Below are positions 12,005-24,462 of a stretch of 64,000 bases of DNA, piece after piece. Each line of letters begins with the position of its first letter. The stretch's first letter is position 1. The notes beneath the pieces were generated by a model that saw only the letters and a list, made by a program, of their open reading frames with translations, was not told the DNA's origin and made no database searches. The DNA comes from Macrostomum hystrix (taxonomy: Eukaryota; Animalia; Platyhelminthes). Where the stretch lies: the NCBI GenBank assembly GCA_950097015.1, contig CATNEN010000003.1, positions 3,906,001 through 3,970,000 on the forward strand, written 5' to 3'. Both the position numbers and the translations under genes were made by a program.

Positions 12005-12093
12005 TGTTTACTAATTGTGCAGAACATTCTAGAAACTTCTCTACCAGAATTTTCCAATACACCCACCCACCGTTTACGTTGCCTTTATATAAA
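12005..12093 (+). promoter_or_regulatory. Heat-shock promoter of hsp70 copy A: perfect 4-unit HSE, TATA box, forkhead-type site
   Basis: aGAAcaTTCtaGAAacTTCt at 12021-12040; TATATAAA at 12086-12093; TGTTTAC at 12005-12011; ATG at 12188. Confidence 0.88.
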
Positions 12094-12187: not shown

Positions 12188-15100
12188 ATGTCGAAGGCTC
12201 CAGCTATCGGAATCGATCTCGGTACTACATATTCTTGCGTTGGCGTTTTCCAACATGGAAAAGTCGAGATAATCGCAAATGACCAAGGCAATCGTACCAC
12301 ACCTAGCTATGTTGCATTTACTGACACTGAGCGACTTATAGGAGATTCGGCCAAAAATCAGGTTGCATTGAATCCTTCCAATACAGTATTTGGTAAGAAC
12401 TTTTTCATTACATTACCATCTATAAACCAACATAAGAAAAAAGAATTATGTTGTCTGCAAGTCCTCATGGCTCAAATGTTTTTTGTCTGCTCAAATGCTT
12501 GACTGTCCGTTTTTTCCACAAATAAGTTTTACAAAGTCCAGTTTTAGTTGATGCCTTAATTAAAACATAAGAAAATTAATTTAAGAATTGTAACAAAAGA
12601 TTAAATCTATAGGTTGTTCAGATGGCCATGCAAGACAATAAAATATTATACCCATATTAAAATAGAGAAATAGGCCTAGAGATGCAATTGTGCTTAACAA
12701 AATTAAAACACACATTAGCTTTTTGCAACTTATTTCTTATTTTCAAATAAAATAAACAATATTTAAACTATAAACTATGTAGCCTAAAGCAAATTTCAAT
12801 TATAGGCCTAAAGCATGTCTGATTAAAATATCAGAATAAGATCTATCTATTTAGTCATTTAACATAATTTCTTTCTAAAAAAGTAAATAATAAGTGCTAG
12901 TAGAGTAGTATTCATGCAGATCAATTCCAAAATAACATTATTTATAGGCCCTAAGTTTATTGATATTTTTTTGAATTGTACTTAAACTTACCGTCATTCA
13001 TAACTTATAACTAAAAAATTCATTTACTTTTCTTCAATGTAGATGCAAAACGACTCATTGGCCGTAAGTTCGATGACACAGTTGTCCAACAAGACATGAA
13101 GCACTGGCCTTTCACTGTCATCAATGATGGTACTAGGCCCAAGATCCAAGTGGAGTTCAAAGGCGAGACCAAGACCTTCTTTGCTGAGGAGATCTCCTCG
13201 ATGGTGCTGACTAAGATGAAGGAGACTGCTGAGGCCTACCTTGGCAAAACTGTCACCGATGCTGTGGTCACTGTTCCTGCCTACTTCAACGACAGCCAGC
13301 GCCAGGCCACAAAGGATGCTGGTGCCATCGCTGGACTGAATGTGCTGCGCATCATCAACGAGCCCACTGCCGCTGCCATTGCCTATGGCCTGGACAAGAA
13401 AAGTGGTCACGAGAGGAATGTGCTCATCTTTGACCTGGGCGGCGGCACCTTCGATGTGTCTATCCTGACCATCGAGGAGGGCATCTTCGAAGTGAAGTCC
13501 ACTGCCGGCGACACCCATCTGGGAGGCGAGGACTTTGACAACCGAATGGTGACCCACTTCATCCAGGAGTTCAAGCGCAAGTACAAGAAGGACATGAGCG
13601 ACAACAAGCGCGCTGTGAGGCGTCTGCGCACCGCCTGCGAGAGGGCCAAGCGAACTCTGAGCAGCGCCGCTCAGGCCAACATCGAGATCGACAGCCTATA
13701 CGAGGGCATCGACTTTTACACCAGCATCACCAGGGCCCGCTTCGAGGAGCTCAACGCCGACCTGTTCCGCGGCACCCTGGAGCCAGTGGAGAAGTCGCTG
13801 CGAGACGCCAAGCTGGACAAGGCCTCCATCAACGAGATTGTGCTGGTCGGTGGCTCCACTCGCATCCCTAAGATCCAGAAGCTGCTGCAGGTGAGCCAGC
13901 CAAGTGCTAATAACTGGTTTATAAGGCTTGTTTAGGTGCTCCCTCACTCCAAAGCAGCTCTTCCCACTGTGCGACCTTCGGCATGATGATATTCTGTAAG
14001 GTATTCGCGGTTTCGACAGACGGACCTGCAGTGGGTCCTTTGATGTCCAAGACCTTCCTTAGTCTGATCCGAGTCGCACATCGAGCTGTTTTTAGTTGGG
14101 GATCAGCAAGTGGATTAGTGTCCAGTTTAATCTCACTAGGGATCAGTCAGTGGATTAGTGTTGGTTTAAACCCTCAGCTCACATGATGAAATTCTGCAAG
14201 GTATTCGCGGTTTCGACAGATGGACCTGTAGTGGGTCCTCTGATGCCCAAGACCTTCCTTAGTCTGAGCAGACTGCCCAGTTTGAGCACCCTGAGCTGGC
14301 AGTGACGAGTCCGCAGACGACTCACCCTGGCCTCTCCCCAACCACCGCGCCATTCCCGCAGGACTTCTTCAGCGGCAAGGAGCTCAACAAGTCCATCAAC
14401 CCGGACGAGGCCGTGGCCTACGGCGCCGCTGTGCAGGCCGCCATCCTCCACGGCGACAAGTCCGAGGCCGTGCAGGACCTGCTGCTTCTCGACGTGACGC
14501 CTCTGTCGCTGGGCATCGAGACTGCCGGCGGCGTGATGACTGCTCTCATCAAGCGCAACACCACCATCCCGACCAAGCAGACTCAGACCTTCACCACCTA
14601 CTCTGACAACCAGCCAGGTGTGCTAATCCAGGTCTACGAAGGTGAGCGCGCCATGACCAAGGACAACAACCTGCTGGGCAAGTTTGAGCTCTCCGGCATC
14701 CCGCCTGCTCCGCGCGGCGTGCCCCAGATCGAGGTCACCTTCGACATCGACTCCAACGGCATCCTCAACGTCTCCGCCGTCGAGAAGAGCACCAACAAGG
14801 AGAACAAAATCACCATCACCAACGACAAGGGCCGCCTCAGCAAGGAGGACATCGAGCGCATGGTCAACGAGGCCGAGCGCTACAAGGCCGAGGACGAAAA
14901 GCAGAAGGACCGCGTCGCCGCCAAGAACTCCCTCGAGAGCTACGCCTTCTCCATGCGCCAGACTGTCGAGGACGAGAAGCTCAAGGACAAAATCTCCGAG
15001 GGCGACAAAAAGATCATCCTCGACAAGTGCGGCGAGATCATCAAGTGGCTCGACGCCAACCAGACCGCCGAGAAGGAAGAATACGATCATCAGCAGAAGG

Positions 15101-15276
15101 AGCTCGAGAAAGTCTGCAACCCCATCATCACCAAGCTCTACCAGGCTGCCGGCGGAGCTGGTGGCATGCCCGGCGGCTTCCCTGGCGGAGCTCCTGGCGC
15201 TGGCGGCGCCGCTGGTCAAGGCGCTCGCACCGGCGGCGGTGGCGGCTCCGGCCCCACCATCGAGGAGGTCGATTAA
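12188..15276 (+). CDS. hsp70: Cytosolic Hsp70/Hsc70, copy A, 3 coding exons, 655 aa
   Basis: Exons 12188-12392 (205 nt), 13043-13890 (848 nt), 14362-15276 (915 nt), all GT-AG and in frame. Motifs [41 protein letters not shown] and C-terminal GPTIEEVD. Confidence 0.98.
13983..14067 (+). ncRNA. U14: U14 (SNORD14-like) box C/D snoRNA, first copy in hsp70A intron 2
   Basis: Box C ATGATGA 13983-13989 and box D CTGA 14064-14067. Domain A TATTCGCGGTTTC is antisense to 18S GAAACCGCGAAU. D'-like CAGA, internal hairpin GGACC/GGTCC, domain B ACCTTCCTTAG antisense to 18S ...AAGGAAGG. Long external stem TGTGCGAC/GTCGCACA. Confidence 0.88.
14183..14267 (+). ncRNA. U14: U14 box C/D snoRNA, second copy in hsp70A intron 2
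   Basis: Same 85-nt layout exactly 200 bp downstream, with identical domain A and B. Box D ends 94 nt before the 3' splice site. Confidence 0.88.
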
Positions 15277-16005
15277 AAGTGCACAAAAATTTCTAATGGC
15301 TGCTATTCAGTTTCAGAGTTTCACCTGACAATTATTTATTAATTTCGATCGAAATCAAGTCGATTTTTACACCGGTGTATCGACTTTACCAAGCAGCACT
15401 ATTTGACTGTCAATTGACTTCCCACACAATATTCTAACCAGGAAACTAATATCAGCGAACCTGAATAATTAATAAATACTTTTATATTCTCTTCCAAGTT
15501 TTTCTGGAATCTACTAAAAGAATAGACAGGTAGGCAAGTTTTATGCCCATTCCTAGCCAATTTTGTCTGTTAGAAACTCTGCTTTCATTGTAAAGATGCA
15601 GAATTTTTCCTAGTTTGCTTTACACGAGCTACAAAAAATCTACTGCTTTTCATTTCTTGACTATTTACCCATTCAACTGGTTCAGTTGCTACATAGCTAC
15701 TCATCGCCATTTGTCCGTTTTTACCTGTGGCATAGCAGAAACGGCTGGCGTTTTCTCGCCTAATAAACAGAAATAATACATTGAAGACCTGAAGTTTTAT
15801 TTTTCGATAGCAAAGCGTTTTGCTTATTTTTTAGGAGGCATTTTGCTTTTTGTTATTAACATCTGAATTTGGTTTTGGTTTTTCTTATTTAGTTCTGAAA
15901 TTCTAGCTTTCAGCATTGAACTGAATAACTCAGTCCTCAGGTTTCGCCCTTTAGACTGCTACATGTTCGAAAATGTTTAAATGTTTGAAACTCCCTAACT
16001 TTATA

Positions 16006-16840
16006 TCCTCAGCTACCCAATCCTCTCCTCAGCTACCCAATCCTCTCCCCAGCTACCCAATCCTCTCCCCAGCTACCCAATCCTCTCCTCAGCTACCCAA
16101 TCCTCTCCTCAGCTACCCAATCCTCTCCTCAGCTACCCAATCCTCTCCCCAGCTACCCAATCCTCTCCTCAGCTACCCAATCCTCTCCTCAGCTACCCAA
16201 TCCTCTCCTCAGCCACCCAATCCTCTCCCCAGCTACCCAATCCTCTCCTCAGCTACCCAATCCTCTCCCCAGCTACCCAATCCTCTCCTCAGCCACCCAA
16301 TCCTCTCCCCAGCTACCCAATCCTCTCCTCAGCTACCCAATCCTCTCCCCAGCTACCCAATCCTCTCCTCAGCTACCCAATCCTCTCCCCAGCTACCCAA
16401 TCCTCTCCTCAGCTACCAAATCCTCTCCTCAGCCACCCAATCCTCTCCTCAGCTACCCAATCCTCTCCTCAGCTACCCAATCCTCTCCTCAGCTACCCAA
16501 TCCTCTCCTCAGCTACCCAATCCTCTCCTCAGCTACCCAATCCTCTCCTCAGCTACCCAATCCTCTCCCCAGCTACCCAATCCTCTCCTCAGCTACCCAA
16601 TCCTCTCCTCAGCTACCCAATCCTCTCCTCAGCTACCCAATCCTCTACTCAGCTACCCAATCCTCTACTCAGCTACCCAATCCTCTACTCAGCTACCCAA
16701 TCCTCTCCTCAGCTACCCAATCCTCTCCTCAGCTACCTAATCCTCTCCTCAGCTACCCAATCCTCTCCTCAGCTACCTAATCCTCTCCTCAGCTACCCAA
16801 TCCTCTCCCCAGCTACCCAATCCTCTCCCCAGCTACCCAA
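16006..16840. repeat. 20-bp minisatellite CAGCTACCCAATCCTCTCCT
   Basis: Tandem repetition; source of the 255-aa pseudo-ORF. Confidence 0.96.
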
Positions 16841-21178: not shown

Positions 21179-24100
21179 TTAGTCGACCTCCTCGATGGTG
21201 GGGCCGGAGCCGCCACCGCCGCCGGTGCGAGCGCCTTGACCAGCGGCGCCGCCAGCGCCAGGAGCTCCGCCAGGGAAGCCGCCGGGCATGCCACCAGCTC
21301 CGCCGGCAGCCTGGTAGAGCTTGGTGATGATGGGGTTGCAGACTTTCTCGAGCTCCTTCTGCTGATGATCGTATTCTTCCTTCTCGGCGGTCTGGTTGGC
21401 GTCGAGCCACTTGATGATCTCGCCGCACTTGTCGAGGATGATCTTTTTGTCGCCCTCGGAGATTTTGTCCTTGAGCTTCTCGTCCTCGACAGTCTGGCGC
21501 ATGGAGAAGGCGTAGCTCTCGAGGGAGTTCTTGGCGGCGACGCGGTCCTTCTGCTTTTCGTCCTCGGCCTTGTAGCGCTCGGCCTCGTTGACCATGCGCT
21601 CGATGTCCTCCTTGCTGAGGCGGCCCTTGTCGTTGGTGATGGTGATTTTGTTCTCCTTGTTGGTGCTCTTCTCGACGGCGGAGACGTTGAGGATGCCGTT
21701 GGAGTCGATGTCGAAGGTGACCTCGATCTGGGGCACGCCGCGCGGAGCAGGCGGGATGCCGGAGAGCTCAAACTTGCCCAGCAGGTTGTTGTCCTTGGTC
21801 ATGGCGCGCTCACCTTCGTAGACCTGGATTAGCACACCTGGCTGGTTGTCAGAGTAGGTGGTGAAGGTCTGAGTCTGCTTGGTCGGGATGGTGGTGTTGC
21901 GCTTGATGAGAGCAGTCATCACGCCGCCGGCAGTCTCGATGCCCAGCGACAGAGGCGTCACGTCGAGAAGCAGCAGGTCCTGCACGGCCTCGGACTTGTC
22001 GCCGTGGAGGATGGCGGCCTGCACAGCGGCGCCGTAGGCCACGGCCTCGTCCGGGTTGATGGACTTGTTGAGCTCCTTGCCGCTGAAGAAGTCCTGCGGG
22101 AATGGCGCGGTGGTTGGGGAGAGGCCAGGGTGAGTCGTCTGCGGACTCGTCACTGCCAGCTCCGGGTGCTCAAACTGGGCAGTCTGCTCAGACTAAGGAA
22201 GGTCTTGGGCATCAGAGGACCCACTACAGGTCCATCTGTCGAAACCGCGAATACCTTGCAGAATTTCATCATGTGAGCTGGGGGTTTAAACCAACACTAA
22301 TCCACTGACTGATCCCTAGTGAGATTAAACTAAGATCACTAATCCACTGACTGATCCCTAATGAGATTAAACTAAGATCACTAATCCACTGACTGATCCC
22401 TAGTGAGATTAAACTAAGATCACTAATCCACTGACTGATCCCTAATGAGATTAAACTGAGGACACGTATCCACTGACTGATCCCTAGTGAGATTAAACTG
22501 GACACTAATCCACTGACTGATCCCTAGTGAGATTAAACTGGACACTAATCCACTGACTGATCCCTAACTAAAAACAGCTCGATGTGCGACTCGGATCAGA
22601 CTAAGGAAGGTCTTGGGCATCAAAGGACCCACTGCAGGTCCGTCTGTCGAAACCGCGAATACCTTACAGAATATCATCATGCCGAAGGTCGCACAGTGGG
22701 AAGAGCTGCTTTGGAGTGAGGGAGCACCTAAACAAGCCTTATAAACCAGTTATTAGCACTTGGCTGGCTCACCTGCAGCAGCTTCTGGATCTTAGGGATG
22801 CGAGTGGAGCCACCGACCAGCACAATCTCGTTGATGGAGGCCTTGTCCAGCTTGGCGTCTCGCAGCGACTTCTCCACTGGCTCCAGGGTGCCGCGGAACA
22901 GGTCGGCGTTGAGCTCCTCGAAGCGGGCCCTGGTGATGCTGGTGTAAAAGTCGATGCCCTCGTATAGGCTGTCGATCTCGATGTTGGCCTGAGCGGCGCT
23001 GCTCAGAGTTCGCTTGGCCCTCTCGCAGGCGGTGCGCAGACGCCTCACGGCGCGCTTGTTGTCGCTCATGTCCTTCTTGTACTTGCGCTTGAACTCCTGG
23101 ATGAAGTGGGTCACCATTCGGTTGTCAAAGTCCTCGCCTCCCAGATGGGTGTCGCCGGCAGTGGACTTCACTTCGAAGATGCCCTCCTCGATGGTCAGGA
23201 TAGACACATCGAAGGTGCCGCCGCCCAGGTCAAAGATAAGCACATTTCTCTCTTGACCACTCTTTTTGTCCAGGCCATAGGCAATGGCAGCGGCAGTGGG
23301 CTCGTTGATGATGCGCAGCACATTCAGTCCAGCGATGGCACCAGCATCCTTTGTGGCCTGGCGCTGGCTGTCGTTGAAGTAGGCAGGAACAGTGACCACA
23401 GCATCGGTGACAGTTTTGCCAAGGTAGGCCTCAGCAGTCTCCTTCATCTTAGTCAGCACCATCGAGGAGATCTCCTCAGCAAAGAAGGTCTTGGTCTCGC
23501 CTTTGAACTCCACTTGGATCTTAGGCCTAGTACCATCATTGATGACAGTGAAAGGCCAATGCTTCATGTCTTGTTGGACAACTGTGTCATCGAACTTGCG
23601 GCCAATGAGTCGTTTTGCATCTACATATAATGGAGAAAAGTGAAAATAAATATTAAATGTCACAAAGGTCAGGAAAAGTGAAGTCTTGGACTCTTAGTTA
23701 ATGAAATTAATTGGGTAGGCCCTACTAGATTTTTTAGTCTTACTTTACATTAGAGAATTTTTTATAATGGCACGATGCCCTTTGTTTAGCTAAATAATTG
23801 AGCTTTGAAGTTAGTCGAGTTAGCTAGCCATATAAAGCACATTATTGATGCACATTTTGTGATTTATAGTAATAGTTTGATTTTTAAGATATTATTATAC
23901 TTTTAGAAAACAAAAATAAGCATATATGAATTTTAGCAGTCTGTTTAAAATATCATAATACGTCAGTTAGTGAAATTTTACACAGTTTTGTTTGAACAAA
24001 TGTCTGATACTGATGAGATGTTAATTTATTATTATTAGTAATTTATTTAGATAAGTATTTTTGTTGTTAAGAATATATAAATAACTTACCGAAAACTGTA

Positions 24101-24294
24101 TTAGATGGATTAAGTGCCACCTGGTTCTTGGCTGAGTCACCGATAAGCCTCTCTGTGTCAGTAAATGCAACATAGCTAGGAGTTGTTCGGTTGCCCTGAT
24201 CGTTGGCGATGATTTCAACCTTTCCATGCTGAAAAACGCCAACACATGAGTAGGTAGTGCCGAGATCAATACCAATCGCTGGGGTTTTAGCCAT
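21179..24294 (-). CDS. hsp70: Cytosolic Hsp70/Hsc70, copy B, 3 coding exons, 655 aa, convergent with copy A
   Basis: Exons 24294-24090 (205 nt), 23620-22773 (848 nt), 22093-21179 (915 nt). Same motifs and intron positions as copy A. Confidence 0.98.
22188..22272 (-). ncRNA. U14: U14 box C/D snoRNA, second copy in hsp70B intron 2
   Basis: Reverse complement of 14183-14267, with boxes C/D and domains A/B intact. Confidence 0.88.
22290..22570. repeat. ~42-bp minisatellite between the two U14 copies of hsp70B (about 7 units)
   Basis: Unit CACTAATCCACTGACTGATCCCTAGTGAGATTAAACT...; fewer than 2 units at the matching site in copy A (14098-14160). Confidence 0.9.
22596..22680 (-). ncRNA. U14: U14 box C/D snoRNA, first copy in hsp70B intron 2
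   Basis: Near-exact reverse complement of 13983-14067, including the external stem. Confidence 0.88.
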
Positions 24295-24433: not shown

Positions 24434-24462
24434 TTATAAATAGCCAAAGAAAATTCTAGAAC
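24434..24462 (-). promoter_or_regulatory. Heat-shock promoter of hsp70 copy B: 3-unit HSE and TATA-like box
   Basis: aGAAaaTTCtaGAAc at 24448-24462; TATTTATAA on the minus strand at 24442-24434; ATG at 24294. Confidence 0.8.

Follow-up and report, generated by a model that had tools for sequence, protein, structure and literature searches.

The window, by which we mean the whole stretch of 64,000 nucleotides analysed here, carries four 85-nt units, measured from box C through box D; a pair of them sits in one intron of each of two convergent Hsp70 genes. We consider it very likely that these units are U14 (SNORD14) genes, arranged as a tandem pair in intron 2 of each hsc70 host, carried by a duplicated block and probably the sole source of U14 in this flatworm. 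The U14 RNA family, intronic clusters of snoRNA genes and the hosting of U14 by hsc70 are already known. To our knowledge, no intron-encoded snoRNA was described before U14 in hsc70; in the searchable literature we found no report of a U14-hsc70 link outside vertebrates.

U14-type units and their pairing with 18S rRNA

From the start of box C (ATGATGA) to the end of box D (CTGA), each of the four copies measures 85 nt; they lie at 13983-14067 and 14183-14267 on the plus strand and at 22680-22596 and 22272-22188 on the minus strand, and TATTCGCGGTTTCG and CCTTCCTTAG were found in each of them. A preliminary description of this DNA had placed 85-nt repeats 200 bp apart in intron 2, which was borne out to the base; the second pair that it had listed at 22188-22272 and 22596-22680 was recovered on the minus strand, and the boxes and the two internal sequences that it had named were all present in every copy. 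In a repeat search, the plus strand pair was returned as 91-nt direct repeats (13982-14072 and 14182-14272) which are 91% identical and exactly 200 nt apart from start to start, and the counterpart pair on the minus strand was returned at 22591-22681 and 22183-22273 with a spacing of 408. The upstream copy of gene 1 (13978-14072, plus strand), identified by cmscan with SNORD14, 18S pairing and sister-species contigs, comprises a terminal stem UCGG/CCGA, box C (13983-13989), domain A (14002-14015), a hairpin (14022-14038), box C' (14041-14045), domain B (14053-14062) and box D (14064-14067). The downstream copy of gene 1 (14175-14271, plus strand), identified by cmscan with SNORD14, its fold and its sequence, has box C at 14183-14189, domain A at 14202-14215, box C' at 14241-14245, domain B at 14253-14262 and box D at 14264-14267. 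On the minus strand, the downstream copy of gene 2 (22188-22272, box C to box D) is identical to that of gene 1, and the upstream copy (22596-22680, box C to box D) is 1 nt off its gene 1 counterpart. Upstream and downstream copies differ at 5-6 positions, none of which falls in any box or in either guide domain, and their similarity stops at the edges of box C and box D. The preliminary description had spoken of four copies; four units are indeed present, but they are copies of two genes, one upstream and one downstream, which differ slightly from each other (91% identity) and which gene conversion has homogenised between the hosts.

When 491 nt were searched with cmscan, SNORD14 was the top Rfam family for both gene 1 copies and was matched over model positions 1-111, albeit at sub-threshold scores of 24.2 bits for the downstream copy and 22.5 bits for the upstream copy (E 0.014 and 0.042, respectively, in this 491-nt search); at about 24 bits, the flatworm copies lie far below the curated gathering score of 64 bits for SNORD14 (Rfam RF00016). 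At the gathering threshold Rfam gave no match in the whole window, and a genome-wide search with Rfam SNORD14 at E<=10, in which 96 of 3282 candidates were scored, gave none. The Rfam check suggested in the preliminary description therefore came out in favour of SNORD14 as best family and against a match at the curated threshold. The cmscan alignment spans box C, domain A, central hairpin, box C', domain B, box D and terminal stem, with a central hairpin of other sequence than the model at an unchanged position. All four copies have box C AUGAUGA and box D CUGA, where RUGAUGA and CUGA are expected, and the terminal stem has 4 bp (UCGG/CCGA) in the upstream copy and three of these four pairs in the downstream copy, which has a 7-bp external stem in addition. 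The four copies provide almost no independent covariation.

U14 is a stable nucleolar RNA of about 90-130 nt which binds fibrillarin and whose depletion stops the making of 18S rRNA. In U14, domain A is a complementarity of about 13 nt to the 5' region of 18S rRNA which is needed in 18S maturation. Domain A of the flatworm RNA forms 14 bp (12 Watson-Crick and two G-U) with the organism's own 18S rRNA at nt 81-94, the canonical U14 site, and 18S C87 faces a G of the snoRNA where the Rfam SNORD14 consensus has A. The vertebrate 18S rRNA has U at the matching position, as the A in the SNORD14 consensus also implies, and the G:C pair at C87 is a compensatory change with respect to A:U. Domain B forms 10 Watson-Crick bp with 18S 421-430, the canonical second U14 site. 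When pairing anywhere on the 18S rRNA was allowed, just 2 of 1000 dinucleotide-shuffled versions of the RNA reached both. The complementarity to the organism's own 18S rRNA, which the preliminary description had named as a check, is therefore present in both domains, and together with the full-length SNORD14 alignment it supports the proposal made there that the elements are C/D snoRNAs of U14 type.

The spacing of domain B deserves separate attention. Box D is 1 nt from the domain B-18S duplex, 3 nt fewer than in the Rfam SNORD14 consensus, and at positions counted upstream from box D, position 5 faces A424 and position 2 faces C421. A conserved U14-guided 2'-O-methylcytidine is reported at the domain B site as human Cm462, yeast Cm414 and Drosophila Cm419 (PMC3511168, PMC11014333). 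Because box D is 3 nt nearer to domain B, the D+5 rule gives A424 and not the conserved C421, and any methylation guided by domain B should fall on A424. The earlier designation of domain B as a methylation guide hence holds for its complementarity to 18S rRNA but not for the conserved C421, which is not placed at position 5. The sister-species copy aligns without gaps, so this spacing between domain B and box D is common to both. A genome search with CCTTAGATG-N-CTGA, which would reveal another guide of canonical form that targets C421 and which covered one guide length and box D-linked guides only, gave three matches, fewer than the reversed control, and none of them was snoRNA-like. The flatworm is predicted to lack a 2'-O-methylation that plants, yeast, flies and humans share, or to carry it three nucleotides away.

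The combined pattern of domain A and domain B occurs at four places only in the 220-Mb genome, while the reversed-pattern control gave zero. Using BLAST, this pattern and a custom covariance model, we found no further U14 genes beyond the four copies in the 220 Mb; the covariance model search scored 150 of 37755 first-look candidates, and since the model searches scored a subset of candidates, a very divergent extra U14 may still exist. Contigs from three studies of a related species match 13983-14068 only, with three differences, no gaps and unrelated flanks, the similarity beginning at box C and ending 1 nt past box D; one of the differences turns a G-C pair of the hairpin into G-U. Among the sister-species contigs, one joins the end of exon 2 directly to the start of exon 3, and this spliced junction identifies that run as RNA. 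Support for expression consists of contigs from another species, which show neither RNA ends nor levels. Similarity confined to the interval between box C and box D, in unrelated surroundings, is the mark of selection acting on the RNA as such.

We also weighed whether the units belong to another or lineage-specific C/D family and act as an ordinary 18S guide for A424 with no role in 18S processing, the likeness to U14 being superficial. The sub-threshold SNORD14 score would agree with this, as would the D-box spacing, with which domain B fits the canonical guide geometry perfectly for A424 and not for C421. However, both complementarities follow U14 in order, spacing and rRNA sites, and no part of the model is left out of the alignment; the duplex of 14 bp that domain A forms at 18S 81-94, with its compensatory change, is the contact that defines U14; and our genome searches gave no other U14 candidate, though U14 is reported to be nearly ubiquitous and essential (PMC5122169, PMC7277114). 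We therefore regard another family as very unlikely. Least likely of all the alternatives is that the copies are inert relics, either snoRNA pseudogenes or an intronic repeat, passively carried along by gene conversion of the host. The identity between gene 1 and gene 2 copies is indeed due only to the conversion tract, and the RNA support comes from contigs of a related species and not from reads of the flatworm itself; but relics would hardly show a similarity to a related species limited to box C-box D between unrelated flanks, differences between upstream and downstream copies that spare all functional elements, or a complementarity that follows the organism's own 18S rRNA, in a genome where no other U14 was found. 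U14 genes remain the reading that we favour.

The hsc70 host genes

Host gene 1, on the plus strand, has exon 1 at 12188-12392 (68 codons plus 1 nt, ending ...NTVF/D; Pfam HSP70 E 5.7e-28), exon 2 at 13043-13890 (ending ...KIQKLLQ in phase 0; E 1.6e-129) and exon 3 at 14362-15276 (ending ...GPTIEEVD and a stop; E 5.5e-90), the Pfam searches having been made with the exons taken singly. Its intron 2 (13891-14361, 471 nt, GT..AG) sits after codon Q351 and contains both U14 genes. Host gene 2, on the minus strand, has exon 1 at 24090-24294, with about 80% DNA identity to exon 1 of gene 1, exon 2 at 22773-23620, whose protein is 100% identical to that of gene 1, and exon 3 at 21179-22093, which matches gene 1 without a difference throughout the conversion tract; its intron 2 (22094-22772, 679 nt) contains both U14 genes and an expanded minisatellite at 22295-22566. 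The block of exon 2, intron 2 and exon 3 thus occurs twice, in two convergent paralogues, which gene conversion has homogenised, and the sharp conversion tract keeps the U14 genes identical between the two hosts.

The C-terminus of the hosts has a GGMP motif and PTIEEVD, and among their closest database matches, most of those with a name are labelled 'heat shock cognate 71 kDa'. Another contig carries four intronless, HSE-rich hsp70 genes with 3-4 HSE arrays. Judged by these features, the intronless paralogues are of the inducible type, and the U14 hosts are of the cognate (hsc70) type, that is, cytosolic, intron-bearing Hsp70. Upstream of host gene 1, an HSE array at 12021-12055 (plus strand) has four perfect nGAAn/nTTCn units followed by three units with one mismatch, with TATATAAA at 12086-12093 and the ATG at 12188. 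Host gene 2 has an HSE of three perfect units at 24448-24462 (minus strand), upstream of TATTTATAA at 24442-24434. The 'HSE-driven hsp70' of the preliminary description is therefore correct as to the Hsp70 family and the upstream HSEs, but not as to a classical inducible hsp70, the hosts being cognate genes with modest HSEs. An origin of the HSE promoters from solo LTRs was ruled out, as both promoters are single-copy in the genome.

Layout and proposed release of two RNAs from one intron

The last intron base lies 94 nt past the end of the downstream box D, in agreement with the distance to the 3' splice site given earlier. A putative branch-like CTCAC, recognised by consensus only, has its A at 14324; the downstream box D ends 57 nt ahead of this A, and the 3' splice site follows it after 37 nt. 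The upstream copy has a long external stem, claimed before and now corroborated by fold and sequence, whose 5' arm (13951-13981, plus strand) pairs with 14069-14092 in both the MFE and the centroid fold, through AAAGCAGCUC (13951-13960) with GAGCUGUUU (14083-14091) and, on the inner side, GUGCGAC (13969-13975) with GUCGCAC (14073-14079) and UCGG (13978-13981) with CCGA (14069-14072). The 7-bp external stem of the downstream copy, CAGCUCA (14175-14181) with UGAGCUG (14292-14298), was absent from the preliminary description. Published rules concern long external stems and a preference of C/D snoRNAs for a site about 50 nt ahead of the branch point (PMC5519232); a branch-like site at 57 nt and the long stem support the earlier view that the layout conforms to them. 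The spacer between the copies (14096-14172, plus strand) consists of about two units of a 40-42-nt minisatellite, as against about 6.6 units in gene 2. A fold of the whole intron had no energy beyond that of shuffles (z -0.75) and gave no convincing spacer hairpin. The spacer repeat is unique to the U14 locus, which ruled it out as a mobile element.

The layout of one snoRNA per intron seen in vertebrates could be restored if an unannotated micro-exon in the spacer split intron 2, and the pyrimidine-rich ...GCTGTTTTTAG at 14085-14095, just past the upstream copy, does resemble a 3' splice site. The spacer has no good GT donor downstream of it, however, and is a minisatellite of variable length (2 vs 6.6 units); the sole junction seen in RNA, that of a related species, runs from exon 2 straight to exon 3, and a retained micro-exon would need to keep the Hsp70 reading frame. 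We judge a micro-exon to be even less probable than membership of another C/D family, and take intron 2 as one intron with two U14 genes.

The route we infer from this arrangement would begin with transcription of the host pre-mRNA and assembly of Snu13, Nop56, Nop58 and fibrillarin at each copy's C/D kink-turn. The downstream copy, about 57 nt before the branch-like site, would be in a position favouring splicing-coupled assembly, and the upstream copy would depend on its external stem of about 20 bp. Splicing and debranching would be followed by exonuclease trimming to protein-protected ends, and a cut within the variable minisatellite spacer would be required for one intron to give both RNAs. 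In the mature RNA, predicted at about 90-97 nt, domain A would pair with 18S rRNA at nt 81-94, where U14 makes the conserved chaperone contact that 18S maturation requires, and domain B with 18S nt 421-430, any guided methylation falling on A424. The locus offers a compact natural model for the release of two C/D snoRNAs from one intron, in which the splicing-coupled position of the downstream copy contrasts with the external-stem dependence of the upstream copy.

Comparison with known U14 systems

Vertebrate U14 introns probably interrupt hsc70 at codons other than Q351, after which the flatworm intron sits, so the introns may not be homologous in position. The flatworm pairing of U14 with hsc70 raises the question whether this link is ancestral to bilaterians or arose twice. 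The preliminary description took the link to be ancient in bilaterians and expected it to couple ribosome biogenesis to heat shock; both may hold but are conjectural. A wider reading, which we put forward only as a rather doubtful conjecture, is that the link predates the split of flatworms and vertebrates, that two HSF-responsive hsc70 paralogues are the sole source of U14 and that domain B has been retargeted from C421 to A424. If true, U14 and hsc70 would be among the oldest snoRNA-host pairs, and a methylation shared from plants to humans would have been lost or moved in the Macrostomum lineage.

In vertebrates, U14 (SNORD14C/D/E) resides in introns 5, 6 and 8 of HSPA8/hsc70 (PMC7277114; PMC2653536). 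The flatworm genes share with vertebrate U14 the order of box C, domain A, central hairpin, box C', domain B and box D, the identical two contact sites on 18S rRNA, the presence of several copies per host gene, and the sense-strand intronic position in an intron-bearing cognate hsc70, which in vertebrates is constitutively expressed. Unlike the vertebrate introns, each with one U14, intron 2 of each flatworm gene holds two copies, and the flatworm host block is duplicated and homogenised. The flatworm guide before box D is 10 nt long as against 14 nt in vertebrates and lies 3 nt nearer to it, and C421 is not its predicted target.

Yeast has a dicistronic snR190-U14 unit, and plants and Drosophila reportedly have snoRNA clusters of which some are intronic (PMC10557570; Liang et al. 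2002; Huang et al. 2005; the last two as cited in PMC2780460). The flatworm locus resembles these clusters in that one precursor would yield more than one snoRNA, which calls for a cut in the spacer besides exonucleolytic trimming. The yeast snR190-U14 unit is independently transcribed and RNase III Rnt1 cuts a defined hairpin in its spacer, whereas in the flatworm the precursor would be a spliced intron, and the spacer, a minisatellite of variable length, shows no conserved hairpin that is evident.

U14 identity and pairing with 18S rRNA

Intron 2 of each of two convergent hsc70-type Hsp70 genes, gene 1 on the plus and gene 2 on the minus strand, holds two U14 (SNORD14) box C/D snoRNA units, hereafter the upstream and downstream copy. 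The twin direct repeats claimed in the preliminary description were recovered by repeat search as 91-nt units at 13982-14072 and 14182-14272, 91% identical and 200 nt apart from start to start, along with the second pair on the minus strand (22591-22681 and 22183-22273). Scripted placement gave 85 nt from box C (ATGATGA) to box D (CTGA) in all four copies, and TATTCGCGGTTTCG, an internal TGATG and CCTTCCTTAG are present in every one of them. In 220 Mb of genome these were the only four places found by BLAST and by a pattern combining domain A and domain B, the two 18S-pairing segments, and a covariance model derived from all four units returned the same four places only, among the first-look candidates scored. 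The 5-6 differences between upstream and downstream copies fall outside all boxes and both guide domains, and their similarity ends at the box C and box D edges.

At curated thresholds Rfam returned no SNORD14 or other match in the whole window. When permissive filters were applied to the intron, SNORD14 ranked first among the families for each copy; it was matched over the full model (1-111), at 24.2 and 22.5 bits where the gathering score is 64. The alignment covers box C, domain A, box C', domain B, box D and the terminal stem, the central hairpin differing in sequence. Complementarity to the flatworm's own 18S tests identity more strongly than the Rfam score. At least 12 rDNA copies were located in the genome, with identical 18S in the three fetched, and both U14 contact sites pair as expected of U14: domain A with 18S nt 81-94 (UGAAACCGCGAAUG) over 14 bp (12 Watson-Crick, 2 G-U) and domain B with nt 421-430 (CUAAGGAAGG) over 10 Watson-Crick bp, which are the two canonical contact sites. 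Only 2 of 1000 dinucleotide shuffles reached both pairings, counted anywhere on 18S with the correct sites not required. Moreover, the 18S carries C87 and the snoRNA has G there, versus A in the Rfam U14 consensus; vertebrate 18S presumably has U at this position, as that A also implies, and this is a compensatory change across two molecules. The twin units pointed out in the preliminary description are a genuine feature.

The domain B duplex lies 3 nt closer to box D than in the Rfam consensus (CCUUCCUUAGUCUGA versus CCUUCCUUGGAUGUCUGA). Methylation falls on the nucleotide opposite position five upstream of box D; by this rule and the short spacing the predicted target is A424, and C421 faces position 2. 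Equivalents of C421 are human Cm462, yeast Cm414, Arabidopsis Cm416 and Drosophila Cm419 (PMC3511168; PMC11014333 Table 1). The short spacing is common to a sister species, organism A, known from assembled contigs of RNA-type runs, which aligns here ungapped. The 18S upstream sequence CCACAUCUAAGG, which we take to be the same as in Drosophila, would have allowed a guide of canonical form to pair. Nothing snoRNA-like emerged when a separate canonical guide for C421 was sought by pattern, which is a weak negative. This lineage may have lost the conserved Cm or shifted it; alternatively, domain B may act by pairing only. Separately, the CAGA right behind domain A (14017-14020, with counterparts in the other three copies) may represent a degenerate box D'. 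Were it used, the +5 rule would point to 18S A84, where no methylation is known to us.

Host genes and gene conversion

Gene 1 comprises exon 1 (12188-12392), intron 1 (12393-13042), exon 2 (13043-13890), intron 2 (13891-14361) and exon 3 (14362-15276), and gene 2, on the minus strand, exon 1 (24294-24090), exon 2 (23620-22773), intron 2 (22772-22094) and exon 3 (22093-21179). Every exon, queried singly and unjoined, matched Pfam HSP70. Each gene has a single HSE array, at 12021-12055 in gene 1 (four perfect and three imperfect units) and at 24448-24462 in gene 2 (three perfect units). The host had been described as an HSE-driven hsp70; the Hsp70 family and the upstream HSEs stand, but a classical inducible hsp70 does not, because the introns, the C-terminal end GGMPGG...PTIEEVD, the single array per gene and the nearest named database relatives, mostly "heat shock cognate 71 kDa protein", make the hosts hsc70-type genes carrying HSEs. 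Four intronless Hsp70 genes, 79% identical to the hosts, lie on another contig, C33, at 3868664-3869512(-), 3871641-3872489(+), 4230734-4231582(+) and 4642697-4643545(+), two of them forming a divergent pair. The three with a recoverable ATG each have 3-4 HSE arrays upstream and polyglutamine-rich tails ending in ...GP(T/S)VEEVD without the GGMP motif; a 5-unit array 188 nt before the ATG is common to them. These four intronless, HSE-rich genes are likely the heat-inducible hsp70 of this genome. Both host promoters are single-copy in the genome, which rules them out as HSE-bearing LTRs. Between the 3' ends of the hosts lies a 20-nt minisatellite, TCCTCAGCTACCCAATCCTC (16006-16840, ~42 copies, 96% matches), through which an open frame (15973-16740) passes.

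Between the first exon 2 base and the stop codon (~13040-15280 versus 23623-21175, minus) the hosts align with 98-100% identity, whereas exon 1 is only ~80% identical and no alignment is obtained for the promoters, intron 1 or the 3' flanks. The near-identical block is a sharp-bordered gene-conversion tract. Its GC content is 50-70%, versus 20-45% in the non-aligning regions, and the coincidence of this jump with the tract suggests GC-biased gene conversion. The sole length difference inside it is a 40-42-nt minisatellite between the snoRNAs, found nowhere else in the genome; gene 1 has ~2 of its units, gene 2 has 6.6. Thus, four copies are present as claimed, but they do not count as independent genes since both pairs lie inside the converted tract, and the informative U14 sequences are two, the upstream and the downstream copy.

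Proposed release of two snoRNAs from one intron

Human C/D snoRNAs favour a site that precedes the branch point by ~50 nt, and assembly can become splicing-independent via long external stems (PMC5519232). From the end of the downstream copy it is 57 nt to a branch-like CTCAC (A at 14324) and, as previously proposed, 94 nt to the 3' splice site (box D end to last intron base); this copy also has a 7-bp external stem (14175-14181/14292-14298). For the upstream copy the distance to the 3' splice site is 294 nt in gene 1 and 502 nt in gene 2, and it carries the long external stem predicted for it, 13951-13981/14069-14092, in three helical segments. Exonucleases alone would not suffice for two snoRNPs in one debranched intron, and we therefore infer a cut in the spacer, which would free both. 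No conserved hairpin was evident in the intron 2 spacer, whose length varies freely. SnoRNA clusters within introns are a recognised organisation (PMC10557570). Right behind the external stem of the upstream copy, GCTGTTTTTAG (14085-14095) looks like an acceptor for 3' splicing or trans-splicing; downstream of it no matching donor was found, and no RNA use was seen.

Related species and comparison with vertebrate HSPA8

A run-index search found 7-9% of the intron's sampled words in each of 16 small organism A runs from six studies. Three runs, from three studies, were compared with 13851-14400, and each contained one contig matching 13983-14068 only, from box C to 1 nt beyond box D, with 3 differences, no gaps and both flanks unlike the window. 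The listed difference, C>T at 14037, turns a central-hairpin G-C pair into G-U. In one run a contig starting at 14358 has the end of exon 2 directly in front of it, a spliced exon 2/exon 3 junction, which identifies the run as RNA and confirms the intron 2 borders in this relative. The contigs, as assembled sequence, carry no RNA ends or levels; they amount to a conservation footprint and to presence in RNA-type runs, and do not prove a stable 90-nt RNA. Two of them, X1 (199 nt; U14 tail, 83 nt, full U14) and X7 (200 nt; 41 + 86 + 73 nt), each equal one 169-nt cycle extended by an overlap of k-1 or k. In organism A, U14 is accordingly present as identical 169-nt units in tandem or, alternatively, on a circular RNA, for instance a stable lariat (compare PMC8609340). 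One run from a further source, organism B, has 14132-14300 nearly unchanged, plus gene 2-type minisatellite variants, and probably represents DNA from this species or a very close one.

No report of U14 in an invertebrate hsp70/hsc70, or of flatworm U14, was found in the searchable literature. The proposed ancient bilaterian origin of the U14-hsc70 link is a hypothesis; named database fragments suited to a comparison across phyla come from other flatworms, molluscs, a mite and, as a control, a fish. The suggested coupling of ribosome biogenesis to the heat-shock response is speculative. The host is of the cognate type. Intron 2 lies at Q351|D352, and the vertebrate HSPA8 U14 introns presumably lie at other codons; common descent of the intron is therefore not established. 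In vertebrates U14 occurs as one copy per intron, in HSPA8 introns 5, 6 and 8 (PMC2653536), whereas here two copies share one hsc70 intron. The locus is a flatworm case of the known U14-in-hsc70 arrangement, with three particulars of its own: each host intron carries two copies, the locus is duplicated and has undergone gene conversion, and the predicted domain B target is shifted.
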